Assembly: GCA_028023455.1 (NCBI GenBank)
Contig: JAQFVV010000002.1
Coordinates: 16,864,001-16,928,000, forward strand
From: Epiperipatus broadwayi
Lineage: Eukaryota; Animalia; Onychophora
Reading direction: 5' to 3'
DNA: 64,000 nt
Shown here: piece after piece, positions 2,560-56,307 of the stretch
Numbering within the stretch: position 1 is the first letter of the stretch
How the letters are laid out: each line of letters begins with the position of its first letter
Position numbers and translations under genes: made by a program
Notes under the pieces: generated by a model
Seen by the model: the letters and a program-made list of their open reading frames with translations, nothing else
What the model was told of the DNA's origin: nothing
Database searches by the model: none

Positions 2560-4720
2560 GAATAACTAAAATCATGCCATGTCTAAAAGGTTATTTTATT
2601 GTTTCATTGTATAAAAAAAGAATGAAATAAATTACTGCAGCAATTATTATAGAATATAGCAAAGGTATTTACAATGTTTTTTGATTAATAAGTTGCTTCC
2701 GGTCATAGATGAATGAATGTATAGTGTTTATAGAATCAAAAAGTAGTGTAGACATGATTTTTGTTTTTAGAAAAGAGCCTGAAAAATGCTTTAATCAAAG
2801 GAGTTATTTACATATTGCTTTAATTGATTCAGTGAAGGTATTTGGCTTAATAAATTCGCCAAGACTGTAGCAATGTTTGAAATTAATTGGTTATTCAATG
2901 AAATTTATTTATATTATACAGCTTTTATATGATGCAATTAGGGAAGTATTATTATTGCTGGTGGCAAACTTTTAGCATTTAATGCTGAAATTGATGTTAT
3001 ACTAGGATGTGGTTTAACTGTTTAGATTTGATTTTTGCTCAATTAGTTATAAACTAATTAAAAGCACCTATAATTTTTTGGTGAATATTGATGTACAACA
3101 AATTAACACTCGATCTTTTTCATACATAATTCATATTTTATGGCAACAATCCATTTCAGTCTACTTAGCTATACTTTAAACATGCTTTAACCTATATTCA
3201 ATGCACTTTAAAATTCATAATAATCAAGCATATTTTGCCAATAGAGGGAACCTTCCAAACCATAACACAAGATAATGACTTTTATAAAGATAAGAGCAGC
3301 TGTCTTATCTTTAACCTCAGCAAAATATGCTTGATTATTGCAAATTTTAAAGTGCATTGAGTACAGGTTGAAGCCTGTTTAAAATATTTACATATGCTTT
3401 CTGTGCGCTCAGTAAATTAATTACTATTTAATAGTTTATAGAATTTCCAATATTAAGATCGTAATATTAACTCACTGTAAATCGCAAGATTTCATGTAAG
3501 TTAATTTGTAAAGGAAATAATGAACTTAAACAGTGGAGAAAATAACTACTTCATGCTTCCAAATCAAGATGCTTCAGATTTGCCACATAAGTGGACATTT
3601 AGGTTAAAGATAAGACGGCCGCTCTTATCTTTATAAAAGTCATTATCTTGTGTCGTGGTTTGGAAGGTTCCCTCTATCAGCAAAATAAGCTTGATTATTA
3701 CGAATTTTAAAGTGCATTGAATACAGATTATAGCCTGTTTAATGTATTTACATATGCTTTCTGTGCACTCAATAAATTAATTACTACTCTACTTAGCTAT
3801 GAAAATAACTGAGAACAGTCAATGGATGTCAGATGATAGTTTCTTCTCTTAGTAAGTTCATGAAACAAATATCAAGATACATTATAGATTTAATATTGGA
3901 GTTTTTAATTTGAACCAATTAAAATCAATAACAAAAGTTTCATTTTCTTAATTTTCTAGATTATACAGATTGTTCTTGATGTTCTGTATACATCATATAA
4001 AAATTTTGGTTTAGTAGTTAATGTTTAAAAGACTTGAGTGTTTTAATTAGCCTATGATGGAAGAAAAATCTTTGGGAACTTTTAACTTGTTAAGATTATC
4101 ATTTTGAGACTGTGAGTCAATTTAATATTTTGATAACAATTAAATAGGAAGGTGGATTTAGATGTTGGGATTCAACTCAGACTTTAGTATGAAGGAGCTG
4201 TATTTAAAAAGTTAAAAGTCAATGGATTTTATTGTAATGATAAAACTATTTTGCAATTACATTAATTGCGTATAGAGCTATTATTTTGCCCAGTATGAAA
4301 ATGAGCTCTAGATCCAATTTCAATGTAATATGGTATTAGAAAAAAATTATTTAAAGAATTTTCATATGATTGTAAAAATAAGATGTCAACATTATAAAAG
4401 CAAATCAAAATTGTGCTTAGTTTGCTGTTCTGGAATAAAGTCTGTTATTGAAAAATCATATTTTCATTTAATTGGGTCATTTGAAATGAATGAACAATAA
4501 TAAACATCTATAAAAAGTATGGTATGGTGAGCTTGAGTGATAATTTTCATAGATGAGACATACCCCATTTATATTATATAAAGCATCTCAAAGATTTTCT
4601 AAGTTAATAATATTAATGGCTTCCACGGGAAAGATATGTCTGACAATAGAATACAGAGGAAGACTAGAATTAGGCACATTTTGCTGCAGAAGAAGTTAAA
4701 GAATCATTAGATAAACAATC
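2560..4720 (+). mobile_element. Decayed RTE-type non-LTR retrotransposon (RT to C-terminus), interrupted by the 3173-3787 insertion
   Basis: Broken frames give LHIALIDSVKVF (about LYIAFIDxxKAF), EIDVILGCGLT (about TGVxQGCxLS) and MSDNRIQRK (about RMxDxRIxRK). Many stops. Confidence 0.5.
3173..3787. mobile_element. S-family short element: inverted arm plus tandem 360-nt unit, 13-bp TSD
   Basis: TSD tctacttagctat at 3160-3172 and 3788-3800. 3173-3317 is the inverse of about 3600-3750; the block at 3318 repeats at 3678 (period 360). Confidence 0.85.
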
Positions 4721-5808: not shown

Positions 5809-5850
5809 TTAGGAGCGCTTTCGATTACCCTAGTAAGCTTTGTCAACTAA
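5809..5850 (-). ncRNA. Minimal type I hammerhead at PLE 3' end, U3-A8 core variant
   Basis: - strand reads ttag TTGACAA ag c ttac tagg gtaa t c GAAA gcgc TC ctaa. Palindromic GCGC stem/loop III; lies just downstream of the GIY-YIG stop. Confidence 0.75.
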
Positions 5851-7190
5851 CACTTTGAAAGGCTAACCTTCCCATAATTCCGTGATCTTAATGTTTGCTG
5901 CCTGCCTGTTAATTAAGTCATGTTTGTATTTAGATATTAGCATAGCTTCCTTTATTTTCATTTTATTGTTATTTTTTTCAATTTGCAACATTTTTACATT
6001 ATTAAAATTGAAGTGAAAACCATAAATACATGACTTATTATGGTCATAAAAAACAAATGCTGAAATATTATTATCTACTTTACAATTTTGTTTCATTTTC
6101 TGTACCTGTTTTAATAACAGCAAGTGCTCTTTAATTCTTTTTTCCAATGTACATTTCCATTCACCTACCACACCTACATATCCATTTATAAATGACACAA
6201 TTTTTATTTATAAATAAGGTTTTATCTTTAGAGTTATTTATTAATTTGTTTAATGTAGGAGGTGTGTAAAAAGCAATATCATATATATCTTTATAAATTT
6301 TCCTTATAAAATTTACTTGATCATTCAAAATATACGGTATTGATCTCCATATTTTTTTTATTAGCAGGAGAATCAATATTATTATTAAAATTGTTATTCT
6401 TATATTTTGTATTAAAATCTCTAATAACTTTATATATATGATTATAATTGTAGACAACATTTAACAATTCATTCGAATATATTTCAATATTTTTGCCTTT
6501 ATCCGATGAATATTTGCAAAGACTTATTTCTAAATAAGAAGGACTTTAAACTTGCTATTTTGTGTGACATTGGCACTCTTGATTTATATGGAATATAACC
6601 TCTTTTTACTATTGGTTTAATGGTCATACATTAATCCAGCATACATTGATTTCTAGTTATTTTAAGATCAAGAAACTGAATGCACATTAAATTTTCATCT
6701 GTTTTTATTCATTTTAGGCCTTTTAAACCATTTAATTCTTTAAACAACTCATTAATTGTATTTGGTTTGCCACATACAAAAACATCACCAACTTATCAAT
6801 AATATACAGTAATATTTTTTTGATAATATTCCTTTTTCAAAATATTTTCTTCATATTTAGAAATTACAAAATTACATATTTGAGCAACAGTAGGTAAACC
6901 CATTGGCTAGCCATTGCTCATTTTATAAAAATCCTTCTTAAAAACTGCATAAATATTTTTATCAATAAAGCTTAATGTTTCAGTTATAAATTTTATTATT
7001 TTCGCGTTAAAATTTTTTAAACTTAATGCATTGGAAATAATTTCAATAGATGCTAATCGATCAATTGATGTATGCATTTCACTTACATCCAAAATACATA
7101 TTATGTCATTAACATCAATCCTAATGTTACAGATTTTATGAACAAAATCAAATGAAGAACATATTGTATATTTACCAAAACCAAGAATTT

Positions 7191-9622: not shown

Positions 9623-10722
9623 TTAGAAATGAGCGGAATGTGCATATTTTTTCCATTGTCTACAATTGTATGCTTGAAATTGAAAATCAGTAATTAAAAT
9701 TTTTAAAATGCATATATAAAATAAACTGAAACCATTTCAGTACTAACATATAAGTAAGTGTAAAGCTGTAATCACCTTACAGTATGTTTGTATGCCCAGC
9801 CAATTAAAAGATTTGTTACTTTTTAAAAAAATAATATCTGATGTTTAGAAAGTAACATTCATGTTCTGAAAAGTAAGATTGCTATTATAGGATAGCATTT
9901 TTTGTGTGTATTTTATCATTTTTGTAAGTTTTAAAAAAAAACTTATTAAAGATTTTGGAAATTTTCATTAGGAATTAAACATTTAATTTAGCATTATTAT
10001 AATAAAAACCTAAGAATGCACGAATATGTCTAAGATTAATAAAATAAAACGAATTGTTTTATTTTTTAATTTGCTTTTAAAAAGATTTTAAAAATAGATT
10101 AATATTTGTCAAATATATATTGAAATTATTTTATTTTTAATCAGAATTTTTTTTTATTTATATACATATGACATTTGAATTTTTAGAGACCCTAGATATT
10201 AAATGGGAAATACATGTATTTTCAATGTTTATTATACGATGGTATTCATATAATGGATACCTTATTATTTTCATTAAAATGTTTAAATTTTTTTTTTTTA
10301 ATTTCAAATTTCTTTCACCAAAGTAATGATATCAAGAGGAAAATTTAGGAGGCATTGTTTATAGCAAGAGATATAAATGCAATAAATAGAAAAGATACAT
10401 GCTTTTCTATTTCAAAAAGATGGTCCTATATGAATGAACTTGCATAGATTTGCACAAATTATTATACTTAAAGGGTATGAATATGGATAACGAATCTCTG
10501 AAAGCGCTTAACCATAAAGAATAATTATTTCAACTAAAGAATTTTTAGAATTTTTATAAAAATCTATAAAAATTATTGTTTATAATAGCAAAAAGAAAAT
10601 AAGAATAATCCTGCATATAAAGTTGTTTATTAATTATCTTAATCATAGATACTTAAGAATTCCTCATCACTTTCATTCATATCATCACAATCTTCTACAT
10701 CTGGCTCATTACTACTTTTTTT

Positions 10723-11108
10723 AAACCACTAAACATCACATGATCACTATCTCTTATACTAGCACATAATTGTTATTAAACAAGGCAAAACTCTCTCCAT
10801 ACAGTAGTGCCACCTTGTGCCAACCAGAGCTTAAATTGAAAATATTATCATATTTTCAATTTCATTCTCATAGTTAAGTAGAGTTAAAAGGTGGCTGCTG
10901 GAGGGTTGCATTAGATCCTAAGATTTAGATGCAGTGCTCTCAGATCCAAGGCTCCTCACTGCCGAAGGCCATTAGCCAGAAATTAGTCTGGAGATATTGG
11001 ATGAGTAGACACTAGATAGGGATTTTATGCACAAGCCTTCTGGCATCGATTGATTACTCTGGTTGGGACAGGGTGGCTCTACTGTGTGGAGAGAGTTTTG
11101 CCTTGTTT
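10723..11108. mobile_element. R454 retrozyme-like family, copy A (inverted 3' arm plus + strand body)
   Basis: Shares sequence with 19761-20370. Its HHR at 10945-11001 has a mutated core (CTGCCGA). Confidence 0.85.
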
Positions 11109-14100
11109 ATTACTTTCTTTATAAGTAGCCTGTCTTCTATATCAACAATAGTGCTATAAATATCAGTTTTCTTGAAAGACTTTATAATGATTTCTTTTTT
11201 AATGCCATTTCATCACATCTTTATCCAATCATATACCTGGATATTGATGACCTTTTTTTTATTCCTGTTGGTGTTAAATCTTGCTTTTTGATATCATGGA
11301 ACGATTCCAGTTTTATTTATATTACATGTATATAATGTGCCTTCCATTTTTTTTTTACTTTTAAATTTTTTTTTTTTAAAAAGTGTGCAGTATATATAGA
11401 TCTATTTCCAAAATAATTTGAAAAACTTGTTCAAACAAATAAAAAATAATATTTTTATCTGAATAGAAATACATTTTGAACACTTGTCATTTACATCTGA
11501 TTTTAGTTATAATAAATAAATAAATTTGATGGTCTTGTAATAAATTTGGTTTTCAGTAATGGCAAAATCAATGGAAAGTAGTTAAAGATTAATTTTTATT
11601 TTAAGAAATAAAGTACTATATGTTTACTCTTTTTCCACTACTTTTTTTTGTTTGTTTACTGTATATAAAATAAAGCTGTTCATAAATTAATTTAGATTGA
11701 TATTTCCACTTCTATGGCACAGAAATAAAAAACATCAGTGTAATGTTTTTTTTATATATAATACAGAACCCTAAGAAGATATTAAGGAATACGTTATCTG
11801 ACAAGAATTAGTCTTATAAGTATGTTAAAATTGCAAACTTTTTGAATTTAAAGAAATCAAATTGATGATTGATGTCTGATTAGTTGGAATATCCAAAACT
11901 TTCTATTGGATCCATAGTTAATAAATTCCATATTTTAAAAGCGGAAATTGATTGATTTCTGTATAGTTTTCTTTATTAATTTTCATTTTTACAGTGTCAA
12001 AGAAATATATCTGACCCATCTGAGAATTGAAATGGATGCTGTTATATCTTAAGTAATATGTTTACTTATTATCATCATCAGTAGCTACTAATTAACAGAT
12101 GCTATATATTCCAGAACATTTTTTAAAGCTTTTTTCTAATGTCTCTATTTATGTACTTTTTTTTATTATTATAAAATTGATAACTATGTATTTTCTTTCT
12201 TTATGTGTTTTTTTTTTTTTTTTTTACATTCTTTGCTGGCTCATATAGTTTATTCTTTGTCTTTTTTTTTCTTACTTTTCAACATATGCCAATTCATCTT
12301 TTTTTTTTTTTTTTGTCTTTTAATTTTCTTGATATATATATACACACACACACTATTTTAATGGAAATATTTGTCATGTTTCCCAAATATGGTGGAGTTG
12401 ATGACTTGTTGGTACTTTTCATAAATGTTATCATTAGCTTTATTTTACTTTTATAATAAAGAAAGAATGTAATATGTTTTACAAGATGCCACAATGAATG
12501 TCTAGTAAATATTGTAAATAATCAGCCACTCATATACTGCAACAATATCCCTGTAACCAAACTTAATAAAGAAACATGAATACAGAAAACAAAAGAAATA
12601 CAATCAATAAAACAAAATGATACTAATTAAATAAATTAATATATTAGCAGCTAAGTTGGCTATTTATATTATGGCTTATATTAATACAACAAAAATTATA
12701 TATTTAAATTAACAATTGAAATTATTGATCAGAATATTTATGCAAGAATATACTAGTTTTGAGAGAATGAATTTAATCTATATACCATTCCTCAAGAATT
12801 TTAATAATGATTAATGTTAATTAAACCAATAATTGTAATGATATTTTGTTATAATAAAAGATAAGTATTTACATAATAATAATTTAAGAAAATCAATCAA
12901 AGAAAGTAATAATATAGATTACATCTTTTACTTACATTCCTAAACAATGTGAAATTTATAATGCATATTAAATAAATTATATGACAGAAGGTGAACAGAC
13001 TTATGCAGAATTTTCTCTTATCCACGGTTTCAGAGGGAAGGCTTGATATTAGAATGATAAGCATAGATATTTCATTCTGGGTGATGTAGACAGGTCCAGC
13101 AAGTTAGACAATAAGATATTATAACTATATATTATCATAACAGCAAATAAAAAGCTAAAGTAATTGTAATATTATATGTACATAGATGCATTGTATATTT
13201 TAATAAATAATAAATTGTGGAAACAATAAATGAAAGCATATATATTGTAACAGTATGGAGAAATTTAGGGGTGAACTGGGGGTGGTGCCACATTTCATCT
13301 GGGATAATGGCACATTTCATCATCACCCCCAAATAACAAAATATGGAATTAAATATAAAAGGAATGAACATGAGAGATCAGAACAGAACTAACTATAAGT
13401 TCACTAGCCTTAAACAAAAGCAATAATGATCATTCATCATCATGAATGATCAATAATAAAAATAAATAATTAAAATGAAATGTAGAGCATGGACTTTAAA
13501 GGATATCCCCTTTGTGTCAACCAGGATCATCATCTAGATGTCTATAACACTAAATATAAACATATATAACAGACCATTATGCATGAATCCAGCTCAGTGA
13601 ACAAAAACTATAATTTACTGTGAGCAAGAGATATAATTTTAACATATAAAATTTTAAATCTATTGTAGAATTAATTAAATTCACTGGATTAACTTTAACA
13701 GTGAAATATAAATTTATTAATTAGAAACAGTAAAGTGAAATTAAGGTCTGCTGATCATGCTATAAATATATATTCAGCATTCTGATTTTGATTAATAGAA
13801 AAAGAAATAAGCTATTACATTGTGATTGATAAATGTACCTATATATATAAACACTCAGATGTGTTGTATAATAATTTAAAAATGAACATGCTCGAATTGT
13901 CATAGACTTATAAGAATTCATTTTTAGAATACATAATAATTTAACAATTTACAAAGATTTTTAGATGTTTACATGACACATGTCTATATAAATAAGCACA
14001 GATATGCTGTATAAAACATTCTATTTTTAATGATACATAAATAATGATTGATTTAATATATGTTTGAGTACCCATCCAAATGTGAGCACACACAAATGTT

Positions 14101-14700: not shown

Positions 14701-15247
14701 GAGACAATAATCAATTATGATAATCTTCATCTACAAACTTTTTGAACGTTTTATTTTAGAAGACTTGAAGTGTAGCAAATACTTTAATTAATTATTCAAA
14801 ATTATGCTAATATTAGTACACTGTATTCTGCATAATACTTGTTTTACTGAAACCTGACATTTCAGTTTTCCAATACTAAAATATGATACTTGTCTATTGT
14901 ATATAGTCTACTATAATAAACTATGAACAACTCTGTCATTAAAATTCAATCATCTGTATGCAATTAAAGTTTTGTTACATAGATAAAATGTAAAAAACAT
15001 TAATTATAATATTATTGCACTTTTGTTACTTAGCATCTCTTACTAAGGCAAATGTTAGTATAACATTTTGCATTTGAAAAGGATGTTTATAAAAAGCAGT
15101 AATATAATTTTCTATTAATTCTTTCTAAACTATTATTCAATACCTAAACAATTATCTGCAGTTATCTTGATATATATGGGAGCAGACTTTAATCTAGCAG
15201 CCATACACTCATTAGTTATTCTTAGAAAATAACATACAAAAATTTTA

Positions 15248-15461
15248 TTAAACAAGGCAAAACTCTCCATACAGTAGTGCCAACCAGAGTAATCAATGGA
15301 TATCCCTAGACTAGATAGGGATTTTATGCACAAGCCTTCTGGCATCCATTGATTACTGTGGTTGGTACAGGGTGACACTACTGTATGGAGAGTTTTGCCT
15401 TGTTTAAAAACAATTATGTGCTAGTATAAGAGATGGTGATCATGTGATGTTTAGTGGTTTA
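15248..15461. mobile_element. R454 family copy B (foldback-like 3' fragment)
   Basis: Exact 14-bp TSD atacaaaaatttta (15234-15247, 15462-15475). Ends at the family 3' terminus gtttagtggttt. Confidence 0.9.
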
Positions 15462-16490
15462 ATACAAAAATTTTAATAACTTGATAAATTTATTACTCAT
15501 AATATGTATATGAATTAATAGAGTGAATATGTTAAACTAGCAGATTGCTGGTAGAGCTTCGTAATGTAATCAGTCTAAATTCACATGAACATATCTGTAT
15601 AGAGTTGGACTCTATTACAACCTTTTATTAATGTCTTTCATTTCAAAACTATTAACCTTCAAAGTTATTTTCCCATAATATTTTTATCACCATTTACAGT
15701 TCACCAATTTCAGGTTTACCAAGACGTTTTTATAACTTCACTAATTTGCTAATTATTTCACTATAGTTCTTATGCAAATTAAAACATTTAGATTAACTTT
15801 CATTTTGCATAATTCCATATTTTATTTCCAGAGAGGCAACTATTTTTCTCCCTATTGACTAGTTCTGATCACAGACATATAAATCTTTATTTAATACATA
15901 GACTAGTCAGTAGATGGCATATCTACAATTTCTTTGTATTCCATTTGAAATATCAAACCCTATCTCTCTTTGCTTATTTCTTAGACATGTAATATGGAGA
16001 TCAAATAATAGAAAACAACCATGGAGGATGCAATTATTATTTTCCAGACTGTAAATAACTCCTATAAATATCTTATTTTAATATTGGTATCCAGATATAG
16101 TGGACAATGTATTGATTGATTCATGGAAGAGATGATTATTAGCTCAAACTAAAAATTTTTTTGTACTTTATGCATAAGTGGTACAATGAGTATATAAAGC
16201 AATATATTAAAAATCTAAAGTTCATAGAATAATATATTAATAAAGACTATCTTAATAATAACGGAGTAAATGTAAAGAGAAATAATATTATTTAAATTTT
16301 TTTAAGGTAATTTTTTTATATACAATAAATATGTTAGTGTTTTTAATTATATACTGTAGTATACAAACAATACAAAACAAATATTTTAAAAAAATATATT
16401 GCATTTCATTTTTTTTTTATTTGTTTTAAATAATATTTAAATTTACAGATTTTACATAAAACTTTAGTTGTAGTTGCTAATTTACATATA

Positions 16491-16775: not shown

Positions 16776-17238
16776 TCTATATGTATTGCCACACACAGAA
16801 AGCTAGAGTAATCAATGGATGCCAGAAGGCTTGTGCATAAAATCCCCATCTAGTTCCTACTCTTCCAATATCCCCAGACTAGTTTCTGGCTTGTGGCCTT
16901 CATCAGTGAGGAGCCTTGGATCTGAGAGCACTGCACCTAGATCTTAGGATCTAATGCAATCCTCTAGCAGCCACCTTTTATCTCCACTTAACTACAAAAC
17001 TATGAATCTTAAACTGAAAACATCTTAATATTTTCAATCCAAGCTCATTAGCTTATATAGTCATATAGTCTTGGGATATTGGATGAGTAGGCACTAGATG
17101 GGGATTTTATGCACAAGCCTTCTGGAATCCATTGATTACTCTAGCTTGCTGTGTGTGGCAATACGTATAGCGAGTTTTGCCTGTTCTAACAAGTTATAAG
17201 CAAGCATAAGAAATGGTGATCATGTAATGTTTATTGGC
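16776..17238. mobile_element. R454 family copy C (- strand body with intact HHR, then + strand 3' arm)
   Basis: Exact 13-bp TSD ttaaaacaaagaa (16763-16775, 17239-17251). The + arm begins at agtc-ttggga, i.e. at the HHR cleavage site. Confidence 0.9.
16864..16920 (-). ncRNA. Type I hammerhead ribozyme, core intact
   Basis: - strand reads tccaa ggc tcctca CTGATGA a ggc cacaa gcc a GAAA c ta GTC tgggga ta ttgga. 6-bp stem I plus 5-bp distal helix; palindromic CTAG stem/loop III; cleavage predicted at 16877/16876. Confidence 0.88.
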
Positions 17239-17283
17239 TTAAAACAAAGAAACTTTAATATAAATAAAATAAAATAACTAACT

Positions 17284-19760: not shown

Positions 19761-20370
19761 AAACCACTAAACATCACATGATCACCATCTCATGCTAGCA
19801 CATAACTGTTATTGGATGAGTAGGCACTAGATAGGGATTTTATGCACAAGCCTTCTGGCATCAATTGATTACTCTGATTAGCACAAGGTGGCACTACTAT
19901 ATGGAGAGTTTTTGCCTGTTTACTAACAGTTATGTGCTAGCATGAGATGGTGATCATGTAATGTTTAGTGGTTTAACACCAATCCTGCCTAATAGGATAA
20001 TGGTGGCTATGGTCGTTAAAGAGCCAAAGTCACCAAAATGTATGGGTGCTGAATTAAGTTCAGACCCATATGACTATATAAGCTATTGAGCTTGGATTGA
20101 AAATATTACTGTGCTTTCAATTTCATTCTCATAGTTTTGTAGTGAAGTAGAGATAAAAGGTGGCTGCTGGGGGGTTGCATTAGATCCTAAGATCTAGGTG
20201 CAGTGCTCTCAGATCCAAGGCTCCTCACTGATGAAGGCCACAAGCCAGAAACTAGTCTGGGAATATTGGATGAGTAGGCACTAGATAGGGATTTTATGCA
20301 CAAGCCTTCTGGTATCCATTGATTAATCTGGTTAGCACAAGGTGGCACTACTATATGGAGAGTTTTTGCC
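19761..20370. mobile_element. R454 family copy D (short inverted arm plus 1.2 head-to-tail units; defines the 454-nt monomer)
   Basis: Exact 13-bp TSD tgtattttatttt (19748-19760, 20371-20383). attggatgagtagg at 19811 recurs at 20265. Confidence 0.92.
20214..20270 (+). ncRNA. Type I hammerhead ribozyme, core intact
   Basis: tccaa ggc tcctca CTGATGA(20228-34) a ggc cacaa gcc a GAAA(20248-51) ctaGTC tgggaa ta ttgga; cleavage predicted after 20257. Confidence 0.85.
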
Positions 20371-21949
20371 TGTATTTTATTTTGTTTATTCAAAATAAAA
20401 TTGAATAAATTAATACTTATAATGTGTACACAATTGCTTATTTATGATTATTTATAAATACGGCTTTATTAATTAATTCATATTTAAGAAAACAAATTAA
20501 AAAACATATAATGCAATAAAAATCTATTTTATTTCCTGGAAGGTTTTATTGTGAACCCATTAATAATATCATAATTTATTCTCTTTTGTAAATTCTGATT
20601 CACTAGATAAAATTTTTAATAAAGAGAATCATTCTTGACCTATGCTGGTTTTACATTAACATGGCTAGCCCATTGTGAAATATTTAAGCATACATAGCCG
20701 AAAAATCAGCATCACCACACAACTAGTACTTTTACAATATCGGGCGTTGAAATTACAGAATTCTGGTGGGAAAAAAATTAATTATGTTTTTCAAGTAATA
20801 AAGCATTTTATTGTTTGATTTTCACAGAAAGCATGTATCATGGTAATTTGATAAATGGGAATTCTAGTGTGAGCGCACCATTCACACTGCCCTCGGGTTA
20901 GCGGTCGCTATCACACATTCAAACTTAAAATAAAGATCTGACTTTACCCTTCAAGTTTTCCAAATATCAAATAACTTTTTAAAAAATAAATCACTTAGAG
21001 GATAGCAAAAAAAGCTAAAAAATTCAACGTTTTCAATTTCTAATTTATTTATTTTTTAGTTTTGGGTGGAGTTAAGCGTAAATATTATAACTCCACAAAG
21101 AAAAAAAAGCGCAAAAAAATGAGCTTTTTGAATGACTATAAAACCTACCTGTTGATCCCAAAATAATATATATTTTACAATGTTTTTAAACTTCTGTTTG
21201 TAGCTCTCTGTTGTATTTTATTGTCAGCAATATCCTATTAATAAAAATGATGAATATTACATTTTCTAGAGTATCTTTAAAAATAATTTTTATAATTTAA
21301 ATGGAATTTGTTTTTCTCAGAAAACTCATAATCAAGTTTGCTATAAATTACCATTCAATCACTTCTCATGCCCATTATTATGAAGTTGCAGCTTTATAGT
21401 AGTGGATTGTAAAGCACTATATTCAGAAACTTCAGCAATGTAAAGATTGATGTGATATGTTGGACTATTTCCATCATCTATGAGATAATGTTATGTGTGT
21501 GATTACTAACAAGTTGTTTGTATGTGGAAAGTTTAAAATTTGCTATACATTCAACATTCACTCACAGATGATGAAAATAGTCCAACATATCACATCTAAT
21601 AATATACCATCATCACAAACCTTCAGACAAATGTTAAGTTTGATCTTATGGTTTTGTCATCAGATTTTAAAAACGTTATACAACATTTTAAAGGAAATAT
21701 ATTATACGCTATCATTAAAAAGTTCATTATCATGTACATACAATAAATTGAAAAAAATAACTCCATATACAAATAATTTAGCAGCCATAATTATATTACA
21801 TAGCGGAAGTACATTGAAGTTTATGTTGAATCTCAATACCTATATCCTCCTTTTTATCTAAAAAAATACCAAGATATTTAAATTGATTTATATTTTTAAA
21901 TTGATAGCCATTCAATCTTAATGGTTGGTGCTGTACATTTTTCTTTCAT

Positions 21950-23750: not shown

Positions 23751-24183
23751 GAATTTTTTTTTTTTAATTTTTTAATCAAATGTTATAGCATAACCATTGA
23801 TAAATATGCATAGATATTCATTATTATTTTTATAAATTCCAAAAATAAAAGATGCAAATTAGATTTCTTAATCAATTTCAAACCATGTATTCTCATTTAA
23901 TGGTCTGCCCTTGCAAAAAATCATCCATGCGTTCAACTAAATTTCCTCCCTTTATAAGCCGAGTTTCACTAAGAATAGTTATAGCAATATTACATTTTTA
24001 AAGCTTATTAGCTACAATAGCTATCTTTTATCCAGTACTTTAAAAGTTGGCATTAAATAAAGTTTGCATATTCTGTATATCTATATTTAGAAAAAAATAT
24101 TAAATTAAAATACTATTTTTAATATTACCTTTTTCCTTTTGCTTTGCTACTATTACCATTATTGAATTTACAATTACTTCTTT

Positions 24184-24538
24184 AAGAGTAGTAATTAATT
24201 TATAGAGTGCACAGAGAGCTTATGTAAATAGTCTGAACAGGCACTAACCTATATTCAATGCGCTTTAAAATTCGCAATAATCAAGCATATTTTGCCGATA
24301 GAGGGATCTTCCAAACCACGACACAAGATAGTGACTTTTTTATAAAGATAAGCTTCCAAATCAAGATGCTTCAGATTCACCTATATAAATGGACATTTAG
24401 GTTAAAGATGGCCACTCTTATCTTTATAAAAAGTCGCTATCTTGTGTCGTGGTTTGGAAGATCCCTCTTTCGGCAAAATATGCTTGATCATTGCGAATTT
24501 TAAAGCGCATTGAATACAGGTTAGTGCCTTTTCAGACT
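24184..24538. mobile_element. S-family element (same subfamily as 3173-3787), inverted arms
   Basis: 12-bp TSD aattacttcttt (24172-24183, 24539-24550). Same 3' terminus ...ctgtgcactc.ataaattaattactactc, here on the - strand. Confidence 0.88.
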
Positions 24539-26535
24539 AATTACTTCTTTAATTTAGGTAAATAATCATCCAGATACATCAATCTAGCCAGATTATGAGA
24601 TTGACTATTTTTAGATCACCTTTTCTGGGTCCTTCCACATTCAAGATAAGTAGGAGTATTATTAAATAAAATTTCCCCAAAATACAACTATATACAAAGT
24701 TAGAATCCTGACCTCAATCCAGTTCCAAAATAATTCATTACTTGTTGCATTGTGTCAAGCAATAATAACAATTATGACTCCTGTCTTCTACGTCTTCATT
24801 ATTATTGCTTTTTCAGCCTGAGATCATAGATATATGCAATTTTTTTTAAAAAATGGAGTAAAAATTACTATGCATGTAAAAGAAGATAATTAATGAGACA
24901 GCACAAACACGCATTTCCACATGGACAGTTGATGGTCAATGGTGTAAGAATATCATATTATTTATTTATTTTAATGTTGAGCACTTCTATTGATTTTTGA
25001 ATTTAGAAATTGGTAGGTTTGGTAGTTAGATGTTATATATTAAATGGATAATTCTTTTAAATTAAAAAATTTTCAAAGTTTTTAATTTATAGGATTAATA
25101 AATAGATTTATGACTTTAATATATTTAGTACCATATCAATGTTTTTGGATAATATAAAGTTTGAATACAATGTCTTTATGAAGATAGTTATTAATACATT
25201 AAGTTTTTTTAATGAGGCAATTGAAGATATAATTATGTATAAATGCATACAATGTTTTTAATATTTTCAAATAGGTGGATTTAAATTCTAAAAAAAATAT
25301 TTTTATTTGGCATATAATAAATGAGACTTAATATTGTGATTACTGGCCTGTTGGTTATCAATTGTTCATTATCGTTACACATTCTAAATTTTAATATCTT
25401 TAAACATATATTTGAAAGAAGCATCCTTTAAATTACATATAAATGTATAATTTATTAAGTTTAGCATGTCTATTGCACTAAAATTCAGTTTAATTATAAT
25501 TTTTCATGACATATTTTCTATTTTCAAAGTATTGAAAAAAGTCTCCTGTTGCTATATAGTTATTCTGCTATGTTCAACAAAGAATGTTATTTTGATTACT
25601 GCATAATATTTTATCAATATTTCATAAGGTATACTACTTAAATAGAATTAATTTATATTACATGTAGACAAAGTAAATCTAAACTTTTTGAAATTGCTCT
25701 AAGAACATTGTAAAAATCCTAATTATGTAAAAGAAAAAAATAAATGTTTATCCTAATGTACTTCTATACAAAGAAAGGCTTTATATAAATAGTTATGAAA
25801 CTAAAAATAAAAAAAAAACGTTTTTTTATAAATGCAGATGAATGGAAACAAACAATCAAAATCACTAACAACTGATTTTCTAAATTGTGGGGAGGGGAAA
25901 TAATTATCCAATATAATATTAGAAAAAAATTGCTTAGTTATATAAAAAAATACAAAGGTTCTCATACTACAGCAGTTAGCATCACTGCCTGCAATGCCTA
26001 TGCTTTGGAATTTGAATCTAGGTTAAATAAAACATGGATTACTTCAGGTTTTCATCTTTTTTGGAATATTATTTTCTAGTAAAGCCTGAAAACCATCAAA
26101 AACTGGTTAGAAAAATGAGCAACTATGTATATTTATATGGAGAGTGAAGCAAGAATAGAAAAAAAAATTAAACCATTGTCATCCATTATATGTAAAGCCT
26201 GATGAGTAATTCCTTCTATATTATAACTTTATGAGGCAGACATTTCTGAACTAGGTCAATAGCGGCCAAAATATAATTATCTGTCACCACACATACAGGG
26301 ATCTGAATAGAGAAAGATATTTATGTTCAAATGTAGTCTTCTATAAGAGAAGGAAAGTTGGAGAAACTTTTGCTCTTCAGTGAGTTATTTAAAATACATT
26401 TCATATGCATAAATAATGAAATCATTTGCCAACATCAAACTCATTGGGTAAAAAAAAATTATATTGCATAAGTTAATCAAAATGTTTTCTGTGTGTTTTA
26501 ATGCTTTTATTTGATGAAGAAACTGTTTGTTTGTT

Positions 26536-35098: not shown

Positions 35099-36100
35099 TT
35101 CAATCGAATGTATGAAAATAATATTTTAAAATAATCATGCTTCAAATTACCATTTATGATAACTTAAAAAGTAAATTATAAAATAGCTTTGATTTTTTAT
35201 TCACACTCCAGTTAATTGTATGGTTTTCTGTTTTTTCTATGGGGAATTTGATAGATTAGGAATTTTTGCTTTAGATGTTTGAAGTTCTTTCTTAAAAATA
35301 AAAAAAAATGTAAAAATTTAAGCTATTCAAATAATAATTGTCTTTAAAAACAAAATAATTAAAACCATTTTATTTTTATTGTCTTTAAAAAAAAATTAAA
35401 AGAATTTATTTTTAAAAGTAACATCATTCAATAGAATATATGAAAATAATATTTTAAAACAACTTTGCCTTCAAATTGTAATTTACATTAACTTATATAA
35501 ATATTAATTCTTATTAAGCACAATGTCAGCACGTAATACTTATATAAAGCTAAAGCTTTAGTACATGCGCCTTGAGTGCTTAATTAAGAAAAATAGGTTA
35601 GAGATAAGAGGGTCCCTCTTATCTTTATAAAGTCGAATCTCATGTTATGATTTGTAGAGGTCTCTTGCTAAAATTAAGCACTCAAGGTGCATGTACTAAA
35701 GCTTTAGCTTTATTAACTTATATAGTTAGTTATAACATGGCTTTGAACTTTTTATTCACGTTCCTACTCCATTTAATTGCACAATTTTCTTTCCATTTTT
35801 TTTTATGAATTTCATAGACTAGGAATTGTTTTAAAAGCCTGAAGCTCTTTTTAAAAAAGGATTATACATTTAAAAAAATAAATGAATAAAATTTAATTAT
35901 TGGTTTTACAATTTCTCTTTTAAAATATTTTCATGTGATTAAGAAAGTTTTATTTTGGCTTGGAATTATTGTTCATGCTAAATTTAAAGGTTAGATTAAA
36001 TATATTATACATTTCATTAAAAAATGTTAAAATTTAAACTATTTAAGTAATTATTGTCTTTAAAAGATTAAAACCATTTTATTTTTTCAAGTGACATTAT
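35099..36100. repeat. Degenerate tandem repeat (about 329-nt unit) interrupted by an S-family copy
   Basis: The ttcaat.gaat.tatgaaaataatattttaaaa block at 35099 recurs at about 35428; further shared blocks at 35180/35740 and 35320/36035. Confidence 0.55.
35500..35711. mobile_element. S-family element, divergent subfamily, foldback form
   Basis: Exact 13-bp TSD attaacttatata (35487-35499, 35712-35724). Hairpin gataagagggtccctcttatc; 3' motif tattac...tgtgcttaataa. Confidence 0.82.
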
Positions 36101-45936: not shown

Positions 45937-48395
45937 CACACCTATCAATCTTTTTTTTTTCATGTGTCATAGCATCGACCGGGACGCGAACCCACACCCG
46001 TCTGCAACCAACTACTTGCTTACAAGGCGGGTGCGATGACCTCTCGGCTAACAATGCTTGACGACCTATCTTGTGGCCCATAAGGAATATTTTTGCAGCC
46101 CAGACAATATAATGGTATGTAAGAAACATTTTAATAAAAGTTTTGTGACTTAATTTTTACAATATCCTGTTATACATAATTATTAATAATGAAGTACAAT
46201 GTGTGGTGATGCCTGATTACTGTAATCATGTTACACCCATATCTTTTACACACCTTATGTGCAGGTGCACCATTTCCCTCAATTAATGCTAGCAGTGAAT
46301 ATTATAGCAGCCAATTATACAACTACTACAATGTGCCAATGCCATGTCATTAGTCTTGTTCTGACTTATTTGGTGTCCATAACAAGAAATATGTTGCTTC
46401 CAAAGAATAAAAAAATGTGTATTTACATTTCACTTCTTAAATGTATGCAGTTATTCAGTGTCTGTAGGTTAATGTTTAAAAAACAAAAAGAAATTTCTTA
46501 AAATGTTCTTAGTCCTTTGTATTCAACATGTCCCTATTGAAACCAAGTGGTAGTATAAATAAACAAAAATTGCTGACAAACATCAAAATTTTCAAGAAAA
46601 GTGGCAACTGGAGTATTTTTGCTGTGAAATAAAAAATAAAATAATCCACTTGATATACAATAATGTTATTAATGTACCAAAGTTATACAACATTAATCAT
46701 CAACAACATAAATCACAAGTGAAAATTACAAGGGTTTAATGAGAAGAAAAGATGAAAGAGCTCAAGTTGGGACTGAAAAATCAAGGTTCATGTTTACTAA
46801 ATATCACAAGAAAATGAAGAGATGGCGCATTGTCAGAGCTTATAGTGAAATATCAAAATCTTCAGTAAAGAAGGTGATTTTATCAAGGAATGTCAAATTA
46901 AAAGCTGCAGAAATTATTGGTCTTGGAAAGGTGAAGGCTTTTCATGCAATCGCTTTGTATCAAAATACAGCTACAGAAAGAGTTACTGATTTGGCTGACA
47001 ATTTAACTATTCAGACCAAAGCATAATCATCTAGTTTCAAAACTTTTTTACTGCCTGTGACAAAAGTACAGACATTGAGAACATAGCTCAATTAACTGTG
47101 CTTCTTTGTGCTTGCACCATGGATTTCAACATTTTTGAGGAATTATTGAAACTATTTCCAATGCATATTACTAATATAAGACACTATATATTAAATTGTG
47201 TTATTAAACTTCTGCAAAAATACAATCTATCTTTATCAAATTGCCTTCTGTAGCTACAAATGGAGCTCCTTTGATGACTGGCAACAACAATGCTTTTGTA
47301 ATATTATTACAAAAACACAAAGTGAAATTTATGATCGATCCAATATTCATTATGTCAAAAGTAATAAACATGGAAAATGTATTGGTATTTAGCAAAAAAA
47401 ATAAATCAATTTCATAAGATCTTGAAGCTTAAATCAGTGACACTTCTCTGCTTTCTTAAATGAATTAGATAGTGAAGATTACAGTTTGTCCTACTATACT
47501 GAATTATGTTGTCTATTCTATTCCAAGGTTCTTAAAAATTCTGGGACCTGAAAGAAAAAATATGTCAGTTCTTAATAACTAAAAATCAACACATAAGCCT
47601 GTTTTTTGACACAGCGCAGTTGCAAGATTTAACATTCACGATTGATATAAAAAAACACATATAATTTAAATTTAAAACTGCAAGGAAATGATCAGATCAT
47701 TAAGAACATGCATGACCAAGTTAATGCATTTAAATGTAAGCTAATTCTTTAAAAAAGAAATTGAAAAATGAAGATTTAGCACACTTTCCAACATGCAACA
47801 TGAACAAATCAAGTTCAGATGAAATTGCATCATTTCAAAAATATGCCAAAAAAATTTTAATCCTTAGAACTGAATTTAAAACAAGATGTTCAGATTTTAA
47901 ATTTTTGAAAGACAAGTTTTCCTTGTTATAGAATTAGTACATGATGAAATGCAAATGGAGGTAAGTGAGAATGATTCCGATTTAAAGTCAAAATTCAGTG
48001 AAGTTTGCATGCCTGAATTTTACAAATAGTTTGTTATCTGCCAGGTTTGAAAATACTCAAAAATTTACACATTAAATTATTTCCATATTTGGAAGTACTT
48101 ATCAGTGTAAGCACTATTTACAATTATTAAAGGAAATAAGTCTTTTGTCAGATCCAGAGTTCTGACATTTACCTTTGGCATCCTTGTTAACAAAATTTCC
48201 CCCAAAGTAAGAAAGAAGAGATGCTGAGTGTCAAAAAAAAACCCATTAATTTTATCATTGTTCTTGTTCTTTTTTTATATAATACTTTTTGAAATAAACC
48301 TATGCTTATATGAAAATTGAAGTTTTTTTTCTTTGAGGCCCACATAAACTTACACCTTATTTGGACCATGTTAGCTTTTGAGTTTGACATGAATG
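45937..48395 (+). mobile_element. Full-length decayed hAT transposon (GTF2IRD2/Buster-like transposase pseudogene)
   Basis: 8-bp TSD gtctagaa (45929-45936, 48396-48403); degenerate TIR cacacctatcaa / ttgacatgaatg. Translations LKAAEII..KVKAFHAIAL..NT..ERVTDLADNL, VATNGAPLMTGNNNAFV, VNAFKCKL and EMQME...LKSKF. Confidence 0.92.
45947..46063 (-). mobile_element. tRNA-derived SINE inserted in the left end of the hAT
   Basis: - strand reads GCATTGTTAGCCGAGAGGTC...GGGTTCGCGTCCCGGTCGATGC-tatgacacatg-An; acctatc on both sides is a probable TSD. Confidence 0.88.
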
Positions 48396-52823: not shown

Positions 52824-53055
52824 ATATATATATATGTTCTGTGCACGGATAATGAAGCTATTAAATGTAAGTAAAATTATCAAAAGTTACCGCCAAGCAC
52901 TTTGGGACATGCATTAATATTACAGTTCTTAACTAAAGACAAGTTGCCATGAATATAGGACTACAAACTGTCCCGAAAGCGCTTGGCGGTAACTTTTGAT
53001 AATTTTACTTACGTTTAATAGCTTCATTATCTGTGCGCAGAGCACATATATATTA
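52824..53055. repeat. Foldback (MITE-like) element with TA-rich ends
   Basis: About 95-bp near-perfect arms: atatgttctgtgcacggataatgaagctattaaa...gttaccgccaagc..tt.gggaca. Confidence 0.9.
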
Positions 53056-53344
53056 ATTGATTTCAAACGCTAATGAAGTAAAGCCTTAACTAGTAAAATG
53101 ATTATATATTGTTATATTATATCACCGATTTATTCCGTAAAGCAGTTTACTTTAACAACTTTGCCACTGTCACGTGTTCACCAAATCTCTCGATAGTATT
53201 GCAAAATAGATATTCTATAATTAGCAGCAACATCATCAACCCCCAGCTGATTTATAATAAAACATATTGAATAATTATAACAGAACAAGTTTTTAACTTT
53301 TTTATTTAGACTTGAAATTATTACGATTTAAATAAATGGATTAA

Positions 53345-54202
53345 TTATAAATTTTATTAAATGCACATTATTATATTAAGTAATATTTACTAAGCCTGTA
53401 ACCTTATAAATAAGTGTCTGAAAAATTCGAAGGTAGGGACCTCTACAGGTCTTAGCCACAAGCTTACACTCAGAAGAAAAGAGGGAAACCTTCTTTACTT
53501 CAACTTACTTTTATATATGAATAGGTGAAGCTGAAGTGGTTAGATCTAAGAGTGTGAAGCTATTCAATACTTCACTAATTAAGTCCACAATTCTTATTAT
53601 ACATTAATACTCGCGAAATCTTATGATTTACAACGAGTCAATGGAAAGATCTTATAGTAAGAAATCTATTACGATAATTTAAAGTTGTTATTATAAATTT
53701 TATTAAACGCACATTATTATATTAAGTAATATTTACTAAGGCTGTAACCTTATGAATAAGCGTCTGAAAAATTCGAAGGTAGGGACCTCTACAGGTCTTA
53801 GCCACAAGCTTACGCTCAGAAGAAAAGAGGGAAACCTTCTTTACTTCAACTTACTTTTATATATGAATAGGTGAAGCTGAAGTGGTTAGATCTAAGAGTG
53901 TGAAGCTATTCAATACTTCACTAATTAAGTCCACAATTCTTATTATACATTAATACTCGCGAAATCTTATGATTTACAATGAGTCAGTGGAAAGATCTTA
54001 TAGTAAGAAATCTATTATGATAATTTAAAGTTGTAATTATAAATTTTATTAAACGCACATTATTATATTAAGTAATATTTACTAAGGCTGTAACCTTATG
54101 AATAAGCATCTGAAAAATTTGAAGTAAAGAAGGTTTCCCTCTTTTCTTCTGAGCGTAAGCTTGTGGCTAAGACCTGTAGAGATCCCTACCTTCGAATTTT
54201 TC
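53345..54202. mobile_element. S-family element: 2.2 head-to-tail 346-nt units plus inverted arm
   Basis: gcacatt at 53363, 53709 and 54055; inverted arm 54121-54202; exact 13-bp TSD ataaatggattaa (53332-53344, 54203-54215). Confidence 0.92.
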
Positions 54203-54496
54203 ATAAATGGATTAAATAAAAGTTTATAAATTTTATGTAAAATCTTATATTTCCAATAATTTTATTTTCATAAACTATTAACATAATGGTGAAATAATTA
54301 TGTACTTTGTTTTGCTGTAACTAATTTTGGATTAAAGTTTAACATTTCACTGAAAATATAAAAATACAATTTTTATTTTATTAAATAAAAACAAATTGTA
54401 TAAAACTGTAATAAATGTAATACAACTAAATATTTAAGATAAAGAGACAAAAATTATATTGCAACATAGGTAATAACAAAAAACAAATATAAATAC

Positions 54497-54618: not shown

Positions 54619-55702
54619 CTAAATAAATTATAAACATATATTTATAAATATATATTATAATGACATCAACTGTTTATACTTCTATACGAATGTAATAAAT
54701 GTAATAAGTGCACTTACATGCAACTATATATGTGCATAATAATGGAAGATAGTAAAAAAAGCCATAAATTTGTTAAACATGCAAAAAAAAAAGTGATAAC
54801 ATTTTTAGTTGTGATTCAAGAGAAATTTTATTATCTGTCAGACTCTAGTGGTAACAAAACATTGAAAATTAATAAAATAATTTTCAAAGTATATAAATAA
54901 TTATAATTTAAAGAGAGGATCCTTTCAGGAATAGTCTAACAATATATTATATAAAAATTCAAACATACTATTAATCTAACAACTTTATTAATCCTAATTA
55001 AGTAAAAGGATAGTGTAGTTTAGGGATCTCTTTTAAAAATATTAAAATAAAGGGATGCTAGAATCAAATTTGAGCTTTATCCAATCATTATGCTATCCTG
55101 CATATAAATTAATACTGCAATGTAAACAACCAATTAGAAATATATGAAACAATGACATGAAATAAGCAATTGATAAAATAAGTATTTAAGAATAAGATAA
55201 AGTATAAAAATATATACATATGATTTGGAATTAATTGTTTTCAAAATGATAATGTTTGTATGTATTTTTCAAAATGGCATTGGATTCTTTGTGAATAGTA
55301 CAGTACATATATGTTCATGTTTTTCTGCCTTGTAATCACTATATTAAAACCAATCTCACATAAGAGTTAAAAATACAATCTGCTCTTGTTATTAATAGCA
55401 GATATTATTTTCCAATAACAACTCTAAAAGAATAATACACTAACAAAAATGTTAGTGTTATTTATTTTAGCTAATGAAATTTCTTAAAGATGATTAATCT
55501 GTCTCATCTACTATTGGAAGAACAAATTCTCTATTATCTTTATAACTCTTGATCATCTTCTCTCACATCTAACTTATGACCTTCAAAAGATAATAAATCA
55601 TAAAAACAAGTAAAAAGAAAAGACAAGTCAAAATAGAAGAAAAACATAAAATAATAAAGGAAAAAATACTGCACTATCTTATAAGAATTTATCTAAGAAG
55701 GG

Positions 55703-55820
55703 GTTCCCCTCTTTTCTTCCGAAGAGTAAGCTTGTGGTTTAAGATCTGTAGAGGTCCCTACTATCGCATTTTTATACTTTTATATGCATGTGCTTGAGGC
55801 TACAGCCTTAATGAATATTA
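55703..55820 (+). mobile_element. S-family 3' fragment (relative of the 346-nt subfamily)
   Basis: aaggggttcccctcttttcttc..taagcttgtgg..aaga.ctgtagaggtccctac; ctaagaaggg duplicated at 55693-55702 and 55821-55830. Confidence 0.75.
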
Positions 55821-56192
55821 CTAAGAAGGGAAAGTAAAAATTAGTATACATTTTAATATAAGTATATTCAATATATAAAAAAAAGAAGACACAGCAATAA
55901 CAGGTTTTGTATTCTCTTATTGTGAACTCATAAGACAATAATAACAAATGTGTTTTATAAAAAGAAAGACTGCTTTTACTTTAAATTTTTTTACTAACAA
56001 TTAATAACACTGTAATATTATAAATATAAGAATCTTACAGGCAAAAACAAATTTACTATATAGATAAATTTATTTGTGTTAGTGAAATAATTCATTTTAA
56101 TAGATTATTAAATAACAGTTTAGTTTAATATTTTCACAATTCTTATAATATTAGAATACAAGTATAATTTAATATACTTTGAAATTAGATGT

Positions 56193-56307
56193 AATTGTAG
56201 AGGATTTGAACACAGACTTTCAAGCATGTGGTCATATGTATCAGTTGTATGAGATGGAATTGATAGCTGAAAGGTGCTTGAAAGTCTGTGTTCAAATCCT
56301 CTACAAT
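56193..56307. repeat. Foldback element
   Basis: aattgtagaggatttgaacacagactttcaagca / tgcttgaaagtctgtgttcaaatcctctacaatt, perfect 34-bp arms. Confidence 0.9.

Follow-up and report, generated by a model that had tools for sequence, protein, structure and literature searches.

A hammerhead-less family of short non-coding retroelements in Epiperipatus broadwayi and its probable insertion by a Penelope-like enzyme

Insertions of the S family in the window

We have analysed a stretch of 64,000 nucleotides (nt) from the onychophoran Epiperipatus broadwayi (contig JAQFVV010000002.1, positions 16,864,001 to 16,928,000), referred to here as the window, with regard to a family of short concatemeric elements, S, whose units are 360 nt (S360) or 346 nt (S346) long. 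The original prediction, made from the letters of the window, had recognized five copies belonging to at least three divergent subfamilies, and had proposed that their breakpoints cluster at a conserved hairpin. A blastn search with the two unit types recovers exactly these five insertions (c3173, c24, c35, c53 and c55; Table 1), at the places where they had been expected, an nhmmer profile adds none, and we count three to four subfamilies among them. The 360- and 346-nt units are colinear from end to end in the alignment, with the conserved blocks quoted in the original prediction in their places. The family occupies ~4% of the window, whose base composition (22-31% G+C) is that of AT-rich eukaryotic DNA. 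Open frames in S do not exceed 88 codons and have no homologues, and the inspected copies have neither a poly(A) tail nor a simple-repeat tail.

Four of the five insertions are flanked by perfect target-site duplications (c3173, 13 bp; c24, 14 bp; c35, 13 bp; c53, 13 bp) and share a common plan: a duplication, an antisense arm running from an outer end (p) to an inner end (q), a sense part running from the other side of the junction (r) to the 3' end, and the second duplication. The sense part amounts to 0.3-2.3 units in these four, while the layout of c55 is ambiguous; in two insertions it exceeds one unit and forms a partial tandem (1.3 units of 360 nt and 2.26 units of 346 nt). As an example, the arm of c3173 is 145 nt long (the inverted-repeat match is 147 nt, with 91% identity), its inner end lies 5 nt 5' of the main hairpin, and the partial sense unit begins at r, +76 from q, just 3' of a G+C-rich segment that we call block B. 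In c24 the sense part (minus strand, 24186-24352) extends from within the hairpin to the canonical 3' end, and the arm (24352-24538) from −55 to the position called start site 1 below. In c35 the arm (35594-35711, sense on the plus strand) begins at AGGTTAGAG, and the sense part (minus strand, 35500-35596) finishes at the canonical 3' end. The sense units of c53 lie on the minus strand (53345-54124; Tandem Repeats Finder reports 346 nt x 2.3 copies with 97% identity at 53342-54124), and its arm (54124-54202) begins at GAAGTAAAG.

The outer ends of the insertions fall at two places. Four are at the canonical 3' end (start site 2), and four are 37-47 nt upstream (start site 1), namely p of c3173, c24 and c35 and the 3' end of c55; the one exception is the arm of c53, whose outer end is 75 nt upstream of the canonical end. 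A small hairpin, which reads CAGG..CCUG, AAGG..CCUU or AAAGCU..AGCUUU, is found just 5' of start site 1. The opposite end of c55, for which a start at aagaaggg had been proposed, does lie within the 5' strand of the main hairpin, but its exact position is ambiguous, as it overlaps a 10-nt repeat. This repeat, CTAAGAAGGG, is present at both ends of c55 (55693-55702 and 55819-55828), where it overlaps the 5' strand of the hairpin, and represents either a 10-nt duplication with unusually long microhomology to the element or a template-jump junction between the 3' end and the RNA 5' end.

The three copies of the repeated segment in c3173 differ by 9-15%, yet the 13-bp duplication is perfect, suggesting that different template units or molecules were copied. 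We have also considered, and rejected, the inheritance of arm and junction from a single master copy, because each arm matches the sense units of its own subfamily at 91-98% identity, while the subfamilies differ from each other by ~35%.

The same anatomy is seen in the window in a hammerhead-bearing retrozyme family, R454. Thirteen-nt target-site duplications are present in two of its copies (13 and 13 bp), and its outer ends also form two groups, at unit positions ~116-132 and 173-179. The original prediction held that R454 arms start at the hammerhead cleavage site; this is exactly true of one arm (copy 16777-17248, cut between GTC and TGGG). In copy 19762-20372 it is the sense part that starts 8 nt past the cut.

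Table 1. Positions of the S insertions, of the parts of c3173 and of the related elements in the window (p, q and r, and start sites 1 and 2, as in the text).
Feature	Position	Strand	Remarks
c3173, target-site duplication, left	3160-3172		TCTACTTAGCTAT; 13/13 identical to 3788-3800
c3173, inverted arm	3173-3317	-	antisense of unit positions equal to 3601-3747
c3173, partial sense unit, 110 nt	3317-3426	+	90% to 3677-3786
c3173, full 360-nt unit	3427-3787	+	ends at canonical 3' end, start site 2; outer end of the arm is start site 1
c3173, block-1 extended hairpin	3466-3505	+	AUUAACUCAC..AAAUC-GCAA-GAUUU..GUAAGUUAAU; conserved, compensatory changes in S346
c3173, GAACUU (5' strand of candidate long-range helix) and GUGGAG...CUUCAU hairpin	3522-3554	+	
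c3173, main hairpin	3605-3633	+	TAAAGATAAGA-CGGCCGC-TCTTATCTTTA; second copy in arm, 3285-3313
c3173, block B	3659-3676	+	UUUGGAAGGUUCCCUCUA; contains AGGUUC, 3' strand of candidate long-range helix; r just 3'
c3173, target-site duplication, right	3788-3800		13/13 identical to 3160-3172
c24, insertion	24172-24552	-	element 24186-24538; 14-nt duplications AATTACTTCTTTAA at 24172-24185 and 24539-24552
c35, insertion	35487-35724	-	element 35500-35711; 13-nt duplications ATTAACTTATATA
c53, insertion	53332-54215	-	element 53345-54202; 13-nt duplications ATAAATGGATTAA
c55, single copy truncated 5' and 3', fourth subfamily	55690-55826	+	hairpin 5' strand to start site 1 (..TATTACT)
R454, insertions	10721-11112, 15236-15468, 16777-17248, 19762-20372		inverted arm and sense part in 4/4
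R454, hammerheads	16883-16906, 20228-20251	-, +	CTGATGAAGGCCACAAGCCAGAAA; 2-bp helix III
Decayed Penelope GIY-YIG endonuclease open reading frame, two frames	5809-6460	-	..NCVIYKWICRCGR / ..YVGVVGEWKCTLEKRIKEH..

Breakpoints, RNA structure and the search for a ribozyme

The main hairpin was predicted for all five copies and was found in every one, although it is partly deleted in c24. It consists of 11-14 bp, some of which change in a compensatory way from one subfamily to another (A-U to G-C, U-A to A-U), and is the most stable local structure of the unit (-9 to -16 kcal/mol). It carries no strand bias: the strand with the G.U pairs is the sense one in c35 and the antisense one in S346. The inner end of the arm lies 0-5 nt 5' of this hairpin in c3173, c35 and c53, which represent three subfamilies, so that the proposed clustering of breakpoints at its 5' base applies to these copies; it does not apply to c24, where the arm ends 55 nt upstream and the other side of the junction falls inside the 3' strand of the hairpin. 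By our estimate, the chance of finding four of five ends within a 15-nt window of a ~350-nt unit is ~4e-4. The other side of the junction also clusters (r at +76, ~+75, and +68 to +72), just 3' of block B. By analogy with the R454 arm that starts at the hammerhead cut, q can be read as the template RNA's 5' end, and a discrete 5' end of the S RNA at the hairpin is a reasonable and likely inference. The idea that the hairpin region sets the RNA 5' end is thus supported by the arms of three subfamilies; the causes originally proposed for it are weighed below.

Other parts of the unit also appear to be structured. The GUGRAG/CUUCAY hairpin varies by G.U pairs and compensatory changes on the sense strand, as the original prediction had anticipated in noting its G.U variation, and variation of the same kind is seen in the block-1 extended hairpin. 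The two strands of a candidate long-range helix, GRACUU x AGGUYC, occupy identical alignment columns and differ by one compensatory pair between S360 (GAACUU x AGGUUC) and S346 (GGACUU x AGGUCC). The z-scores for folding of the whole unit are modest (-1.5 to -2.8), and RNAalifold predicted no structure from a gapped 11-row alignment of S. The covariation, drawn from two or three lineages, suggests pairing in the RNA, and the conserved hairpins together with the candidate long-range helix most likely form a structure that recruits the enzyme.

In agreement with the original prediction, a pattern search for the hammerhead core CUGANGA...GAAA found none in the S copies on either strand, all 8 matches in the window being elsewhere; the sense S346 unit contains no GAAA at all, and inspection by eye for cores with a variant N3:N8 pair (C3:G8-swapped) yielded none that is conserved in S. 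The comparison with Rfam ribozymes that the original prediction called for returned no ribozyme match in S at E<=10 (751- and 951-nt searches), and over the whole window and small stretches of it, at gathering thresholds and at E<=10, only chance microRNA (miRNA)-like matches on inverted repeats. These negatives are weak for S, because Rfam 15 fails on the R454 hammerhead as well, a search of 651 nt at E<=10 included.

We have also considered twister, twister-sister, pistol, hatchet, hairpin and hepatitis delta virus (HDV)-like ribozymes, hatchet being judged by Rfam alone. A twister fold was rejected as the main hairpin is a perfect helix without conserved loops, and a pistol fold because the pistol cut is 3' of its hairpin. 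HDV-like ribozymes occur at the 5' ends of the non-LTR (long terminal repeat) retrotransposons R2, RTE and L1Tc, where they set the 5' end of the element RNA at the edge of a ~70-85-nt fold, and the q-to-r interval of S is ~75 nt. However, the nested double-pseudoknot order cannot be fitted to S, whose 29-nt perfect hairpin starts just 5 nt past the break: with the cut placed 0-5 nt 5' of a perfect helix of 11-14 bp, there is no room for P1-P3. A hammerhead fold cut at this place is excluded on topology as well. A decayed type I hammerhead could be sketched only in S360 (CAGAUUU-hairpin-ACAUUU, just 5' of the break), with three core positions and the GAAA wrong and no counterpart in S346, and was likewise discarded. 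Processing as a tRNA-like structure or by RNase P was rejected too: ARAGORN finds nothing in S, and a test for A and B boxes gives merely AGTGG- and GGTTC-like fragments, 135 nt apart.

Two causes had originally been suggested for the RNA 5' end. For a self-cleaving motif, S offers no known ribozyme core and no Rfam family; for a TATA-driven start, it offers a TATA-like motif that is not conserved and lies too near the break. In preference to cleavage, we take the most likely cause to be that transcription starts within the upstream partial unit. Such a start is plausible because Penelope transcription begins in the pseudo-LTR, and it would account for inserts of ~0.5, 1.5 and 2.5 units as counted from q.

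Abundance in reads and other features of the window

The representation of S in sequencing reads was surveyed with a query of 501 letters, consisting of one S346 unit plus unique flank. In the DNA run X1, 9,632 contigs match the S query, and the summed word depth, which is not a copy number, reaches 2.1 million in S versus 4.19 in the unique flank, a clear sign that the family is very abundant. The depth is highest at 53557-53590, the equivalent of the GUGGAG-hairpin block, and has a second peak at 53438-54, in block B; both peaks hold strands of the candidate long-range helix, and over the main hairpin the depth drops to a valley. Genome-wide, the upstream block is relatively far commoner than in the window. 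A 109-nt module, from the block-1 hairpin to the GUGAAG hairpin, has many copies in DNA contigs with heterogeneous AT-rich borders and loose ends at 53543 and 53651; its summed depth in reads is about twice that of the downstream half of the unit, yet it is three times rarer in the window. The excess of the upstream block may reflect long tandem arrays elsewhere or, given the loose ends at 53543 and 53651, a separate 109-nt module (satellite-like arrays or another family). Pattern scans of metagenome and viral collections for further S copies gave two chance matches, and searches with the translated S frames found no proteins.

Besides S and R454, the window contains a decayed open reading frame for a Penelope GIY-YIG endonuclease, followed by a variant 3' hammerhead with a UUGACAA (U3:A8) core; the fragments of this frame have no detectable homologues in protein libraries. 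A palindromic hairpin at 52874-53005, 340 nt upstream of c53 and outside that insertion, scores with a plant miRNA model on both strands. An inverted repeat at 56199-56303, with perfect 28-bp arms around a spacer of 48 nt, gives a chance match to a miRNA model and may be a small foldback resembling a miniature inverted-repeat transposable element. A tRNA-Thr (TGT) gene of 89 nt lies at 45970-46058 on the minus strand, and its length could accommodate an intron.

Route of insertion and place among retroelements

The anatomy of S can be interpreted in the light of recent work on Penelope-like elements (PLEs). Frangieh et al. found that a purified Penelope-like protein cleaves the two DNA strands and extends each of them, that reverse transcription begins at two adjacent internal RNA sites, which are non-homologous to the target and delimit a 30-40-bp tail, that unprocessed multi-copy RNA is used, and that in the Anolis Penelope hammerhead cleavage is protein-assisted and dispensable in vitro (PMC11167929). 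According to Craig et al., PLE insertions are 5'-truncated partial tandems (pseudo-LTRs), which often lie next to an inverted copy, itself 5'-truncated, and may carry a 30-40-bp tail, and like tandem and inverted structures are made by the hammerhead-less PLE clades Naiad and Chlamys and by non-autonomous derivatives (PMC8557442). Animal retrozymes are themselves derived from PLE pseudo-LTRs (bioRxiv 10.64898/2026.07.22.740005).

In this framework S is quite probably a non-coding, non-autonomous retroelement of 346-360 nt, devoid of a hammerhead, that is inserted by a Penelope-like reverse transcriptase/GIY-YIG endonuclease, the machinery that also moves the hammerhead retrozymes of this genome. 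From the observed anatomy we infer the following course of events. The enzyme would cut the two target strands ~13 bp apart, and each 3'-OH would prime complementary DNA (cDNA) synthesis at one of the two internal start sites of the S RNA, that is, the canonical 3' end and the site 37-47 nt upstream, just 3' of the small conserved hairpin. One cDNA, short (~80-190 nt), would run to the end of its template, an RNA whose 5' terminus lies 0-5 nt ahead of the main hairpin, and give the inverted arm; the other, long, would copy a multi-unit RNA and usually halt between +68 and +77, immediately 3' of block B, perhaps by stalling at the first G+C-rich stretch of the region already copied. The two cDNA ends would then be joined. 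The RNA 5' end would correspond to the transcription start, with the upstream partial unit acting as a promoter in the manner of a Penelope pseudo-LTR. Insertion of the Penelope type, with both strands primed internally, would explain the concatemers, the inverted arms and the fixed distance of 170-190 nt without recourse to a ribozyme (PMC11167929; PMC8557442). The perfect 13-14-bp duplications, the clustering of r and the Penelope framework are all points that the original prediction did not contain.

Several observations weigh against this interpretation. The breakpoint evidence comes from the five insertions in the window, and in one of them, c24, the template continued 55 nt upstream of the hairpin. 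The case for a transcription start is weak in itself: the tatataaa motif that had been offered as a start signal in two subfamilies is present in c24 and S346 only, is missing in the 3173 unit and in another subfamily seen in reads, and lies ~17-21 nt upstream of the break, rather than ~30. The small runs labelled RNA?, which come from E. broadwayi and a second species, hold S, including the unit-to-unit junction, in a form in which DNA, multimers and circles are indistinguishable, and the contig data speak for abundance and conservation, genome-wide breakpoints not being derivable from them. Finally, no autonomous Penelope with S sequence was found within the window, whose sole PLE remnant is dissimilar to S.

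The regularity of the break could alternatively mean that the conserved multi-helix domain in which the main hairpin lies represents a new class of self-cleaving RNA, possibly protein-assisted, which replaces the hammerhead and cuts just 5' of the hairpin. The break does sit, relative to the reverse-transcription start sites, like the R454 hammerhead cut and like that of the Anolis element, in which the cut is at +26 and the starts are at +111-118 (PMC11167929); arm ends agree within 5 nt across three subfamilies; the region from ~-80 to +68 has conserved helices with some compensatory changes, and in three insertions the long cDNA halts at the 3' edge of that domain. The silence of Rfam means little here, blind as it is to real hammerheads in this window. 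We nevertheless regard a new ribozyme as rather unlikely, since there is no known core in S, the nucleotides that immediately precede the break show little conservation from one subfamily to another, the hairpin is a plain perfect helix without strand bias, the folding z-scores are as modest as given above and the covariation comes from two or three lineages only. Moreover, multi-unit inserts traverse the break site uncut, and hammerhead-less PLEs yield the same insertion structures with no ribozyme (PMC8557442).

Another way to read the clustering is as a structural by-product, the hairpin and block B being places where the reverse transcriptase pauses or where cDNA ends are preferentially joined, with no discrete RNA end at all. 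The stability of the hairpin, the clustering of r between +68 and +77, immediately 3' of block B, and the junction side of c24 that falls inside the hairpin agree with such pausing, but it is improbable: the arms cross the whole hairpin and stop 0-5 nt past its 5' base, not on the 3' side that a block would affect, the copying of internal units passes the hairpin without a break, and the R454 counterpart ends at a true cleavage site. Highly improbable, in our judgement, is that S is a short interspersed element (SINE) moved by a long interspersed element (LINE) with L1-style twin priming, or a rolling-circle or other DNA-level element nicked at a palindrome. LINE-mediated insertion also gives variable duplications of more than 10 bp and 5' inversions, with which S would be in accord, and the hairpin is a near-perfect palindrome at the DNA level; however, S lacks a poly(A) or simple-repeat tail and a tRNA-like part, R454 has exactly the same architecture and duplication size, and Helitron-type rolling-circle elements make no target-site duplications. 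Inversions in four of five copies, together with common tandem units, are typical of PLEs and not of SINEs (PMC8557442).

Insertion by a Penelope-like enzyme, the reading we prefer, also places S among known families. Metazoan non-LTR retrozymes (Cervera & de la Pena 2020, PMC7229834; Li et al. 2026 preprint) are, like S, short (150-450 nt), AT-rich, non-coding partial tandems with duplications longer than 4 bp, and they coexist with PLEs; but each of their units has a type I hammerhead, of which S does not have even a variant core. Thus S shares with retrozymes the short non-coding tandem and the target-site duplication, but, the search for a hammerhead having found none, it falls outside the strict definition of a retrozyme. 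With PLEs it has in common the partial tandems, the inverted arm, the priming of both strands, the AT-rich targets and the lack of poly(A), and the 37-47 nt that separate its outer ends compare with a PLE tail of 30-40 bp (PMC11167929), as expected for two start sites; unlike PLEs, it encodes no protein. Further parallels are Naiad, Chlamys and the non-autonomous Chlamys elements (MRC1), which also have pseudo-LTRs and head-to-tail or inverted insertions and no canonical hammerhead, the non-autonomous Chlamys forms being known, unlike S, from green algae (PMC8557442). No Naiad partner of S was found here, and none was sought. In our view S is best placed among the short retroelements that depend on Penelope, as one that lacks a hammerhead.

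It is the hammerhead that defines animal retrozymes, and opinions differ on what this ribozyme does in Penelope-type mobility. In this respect S offers a natural comparison, as a very abundant family with R454-like anatomy and no hammerhead that resides beside hammerhead families. If the start of its RNA is set by cleavage, S would harbour a new ribozyme class; if it is set by a promoter, the ribozyme would be dispensable for the life style of such elements. The regular junctions of S (q, r and the two start sites) also allow the later steps of Penelope insertion, which are poorly understood, to be read from the genome.

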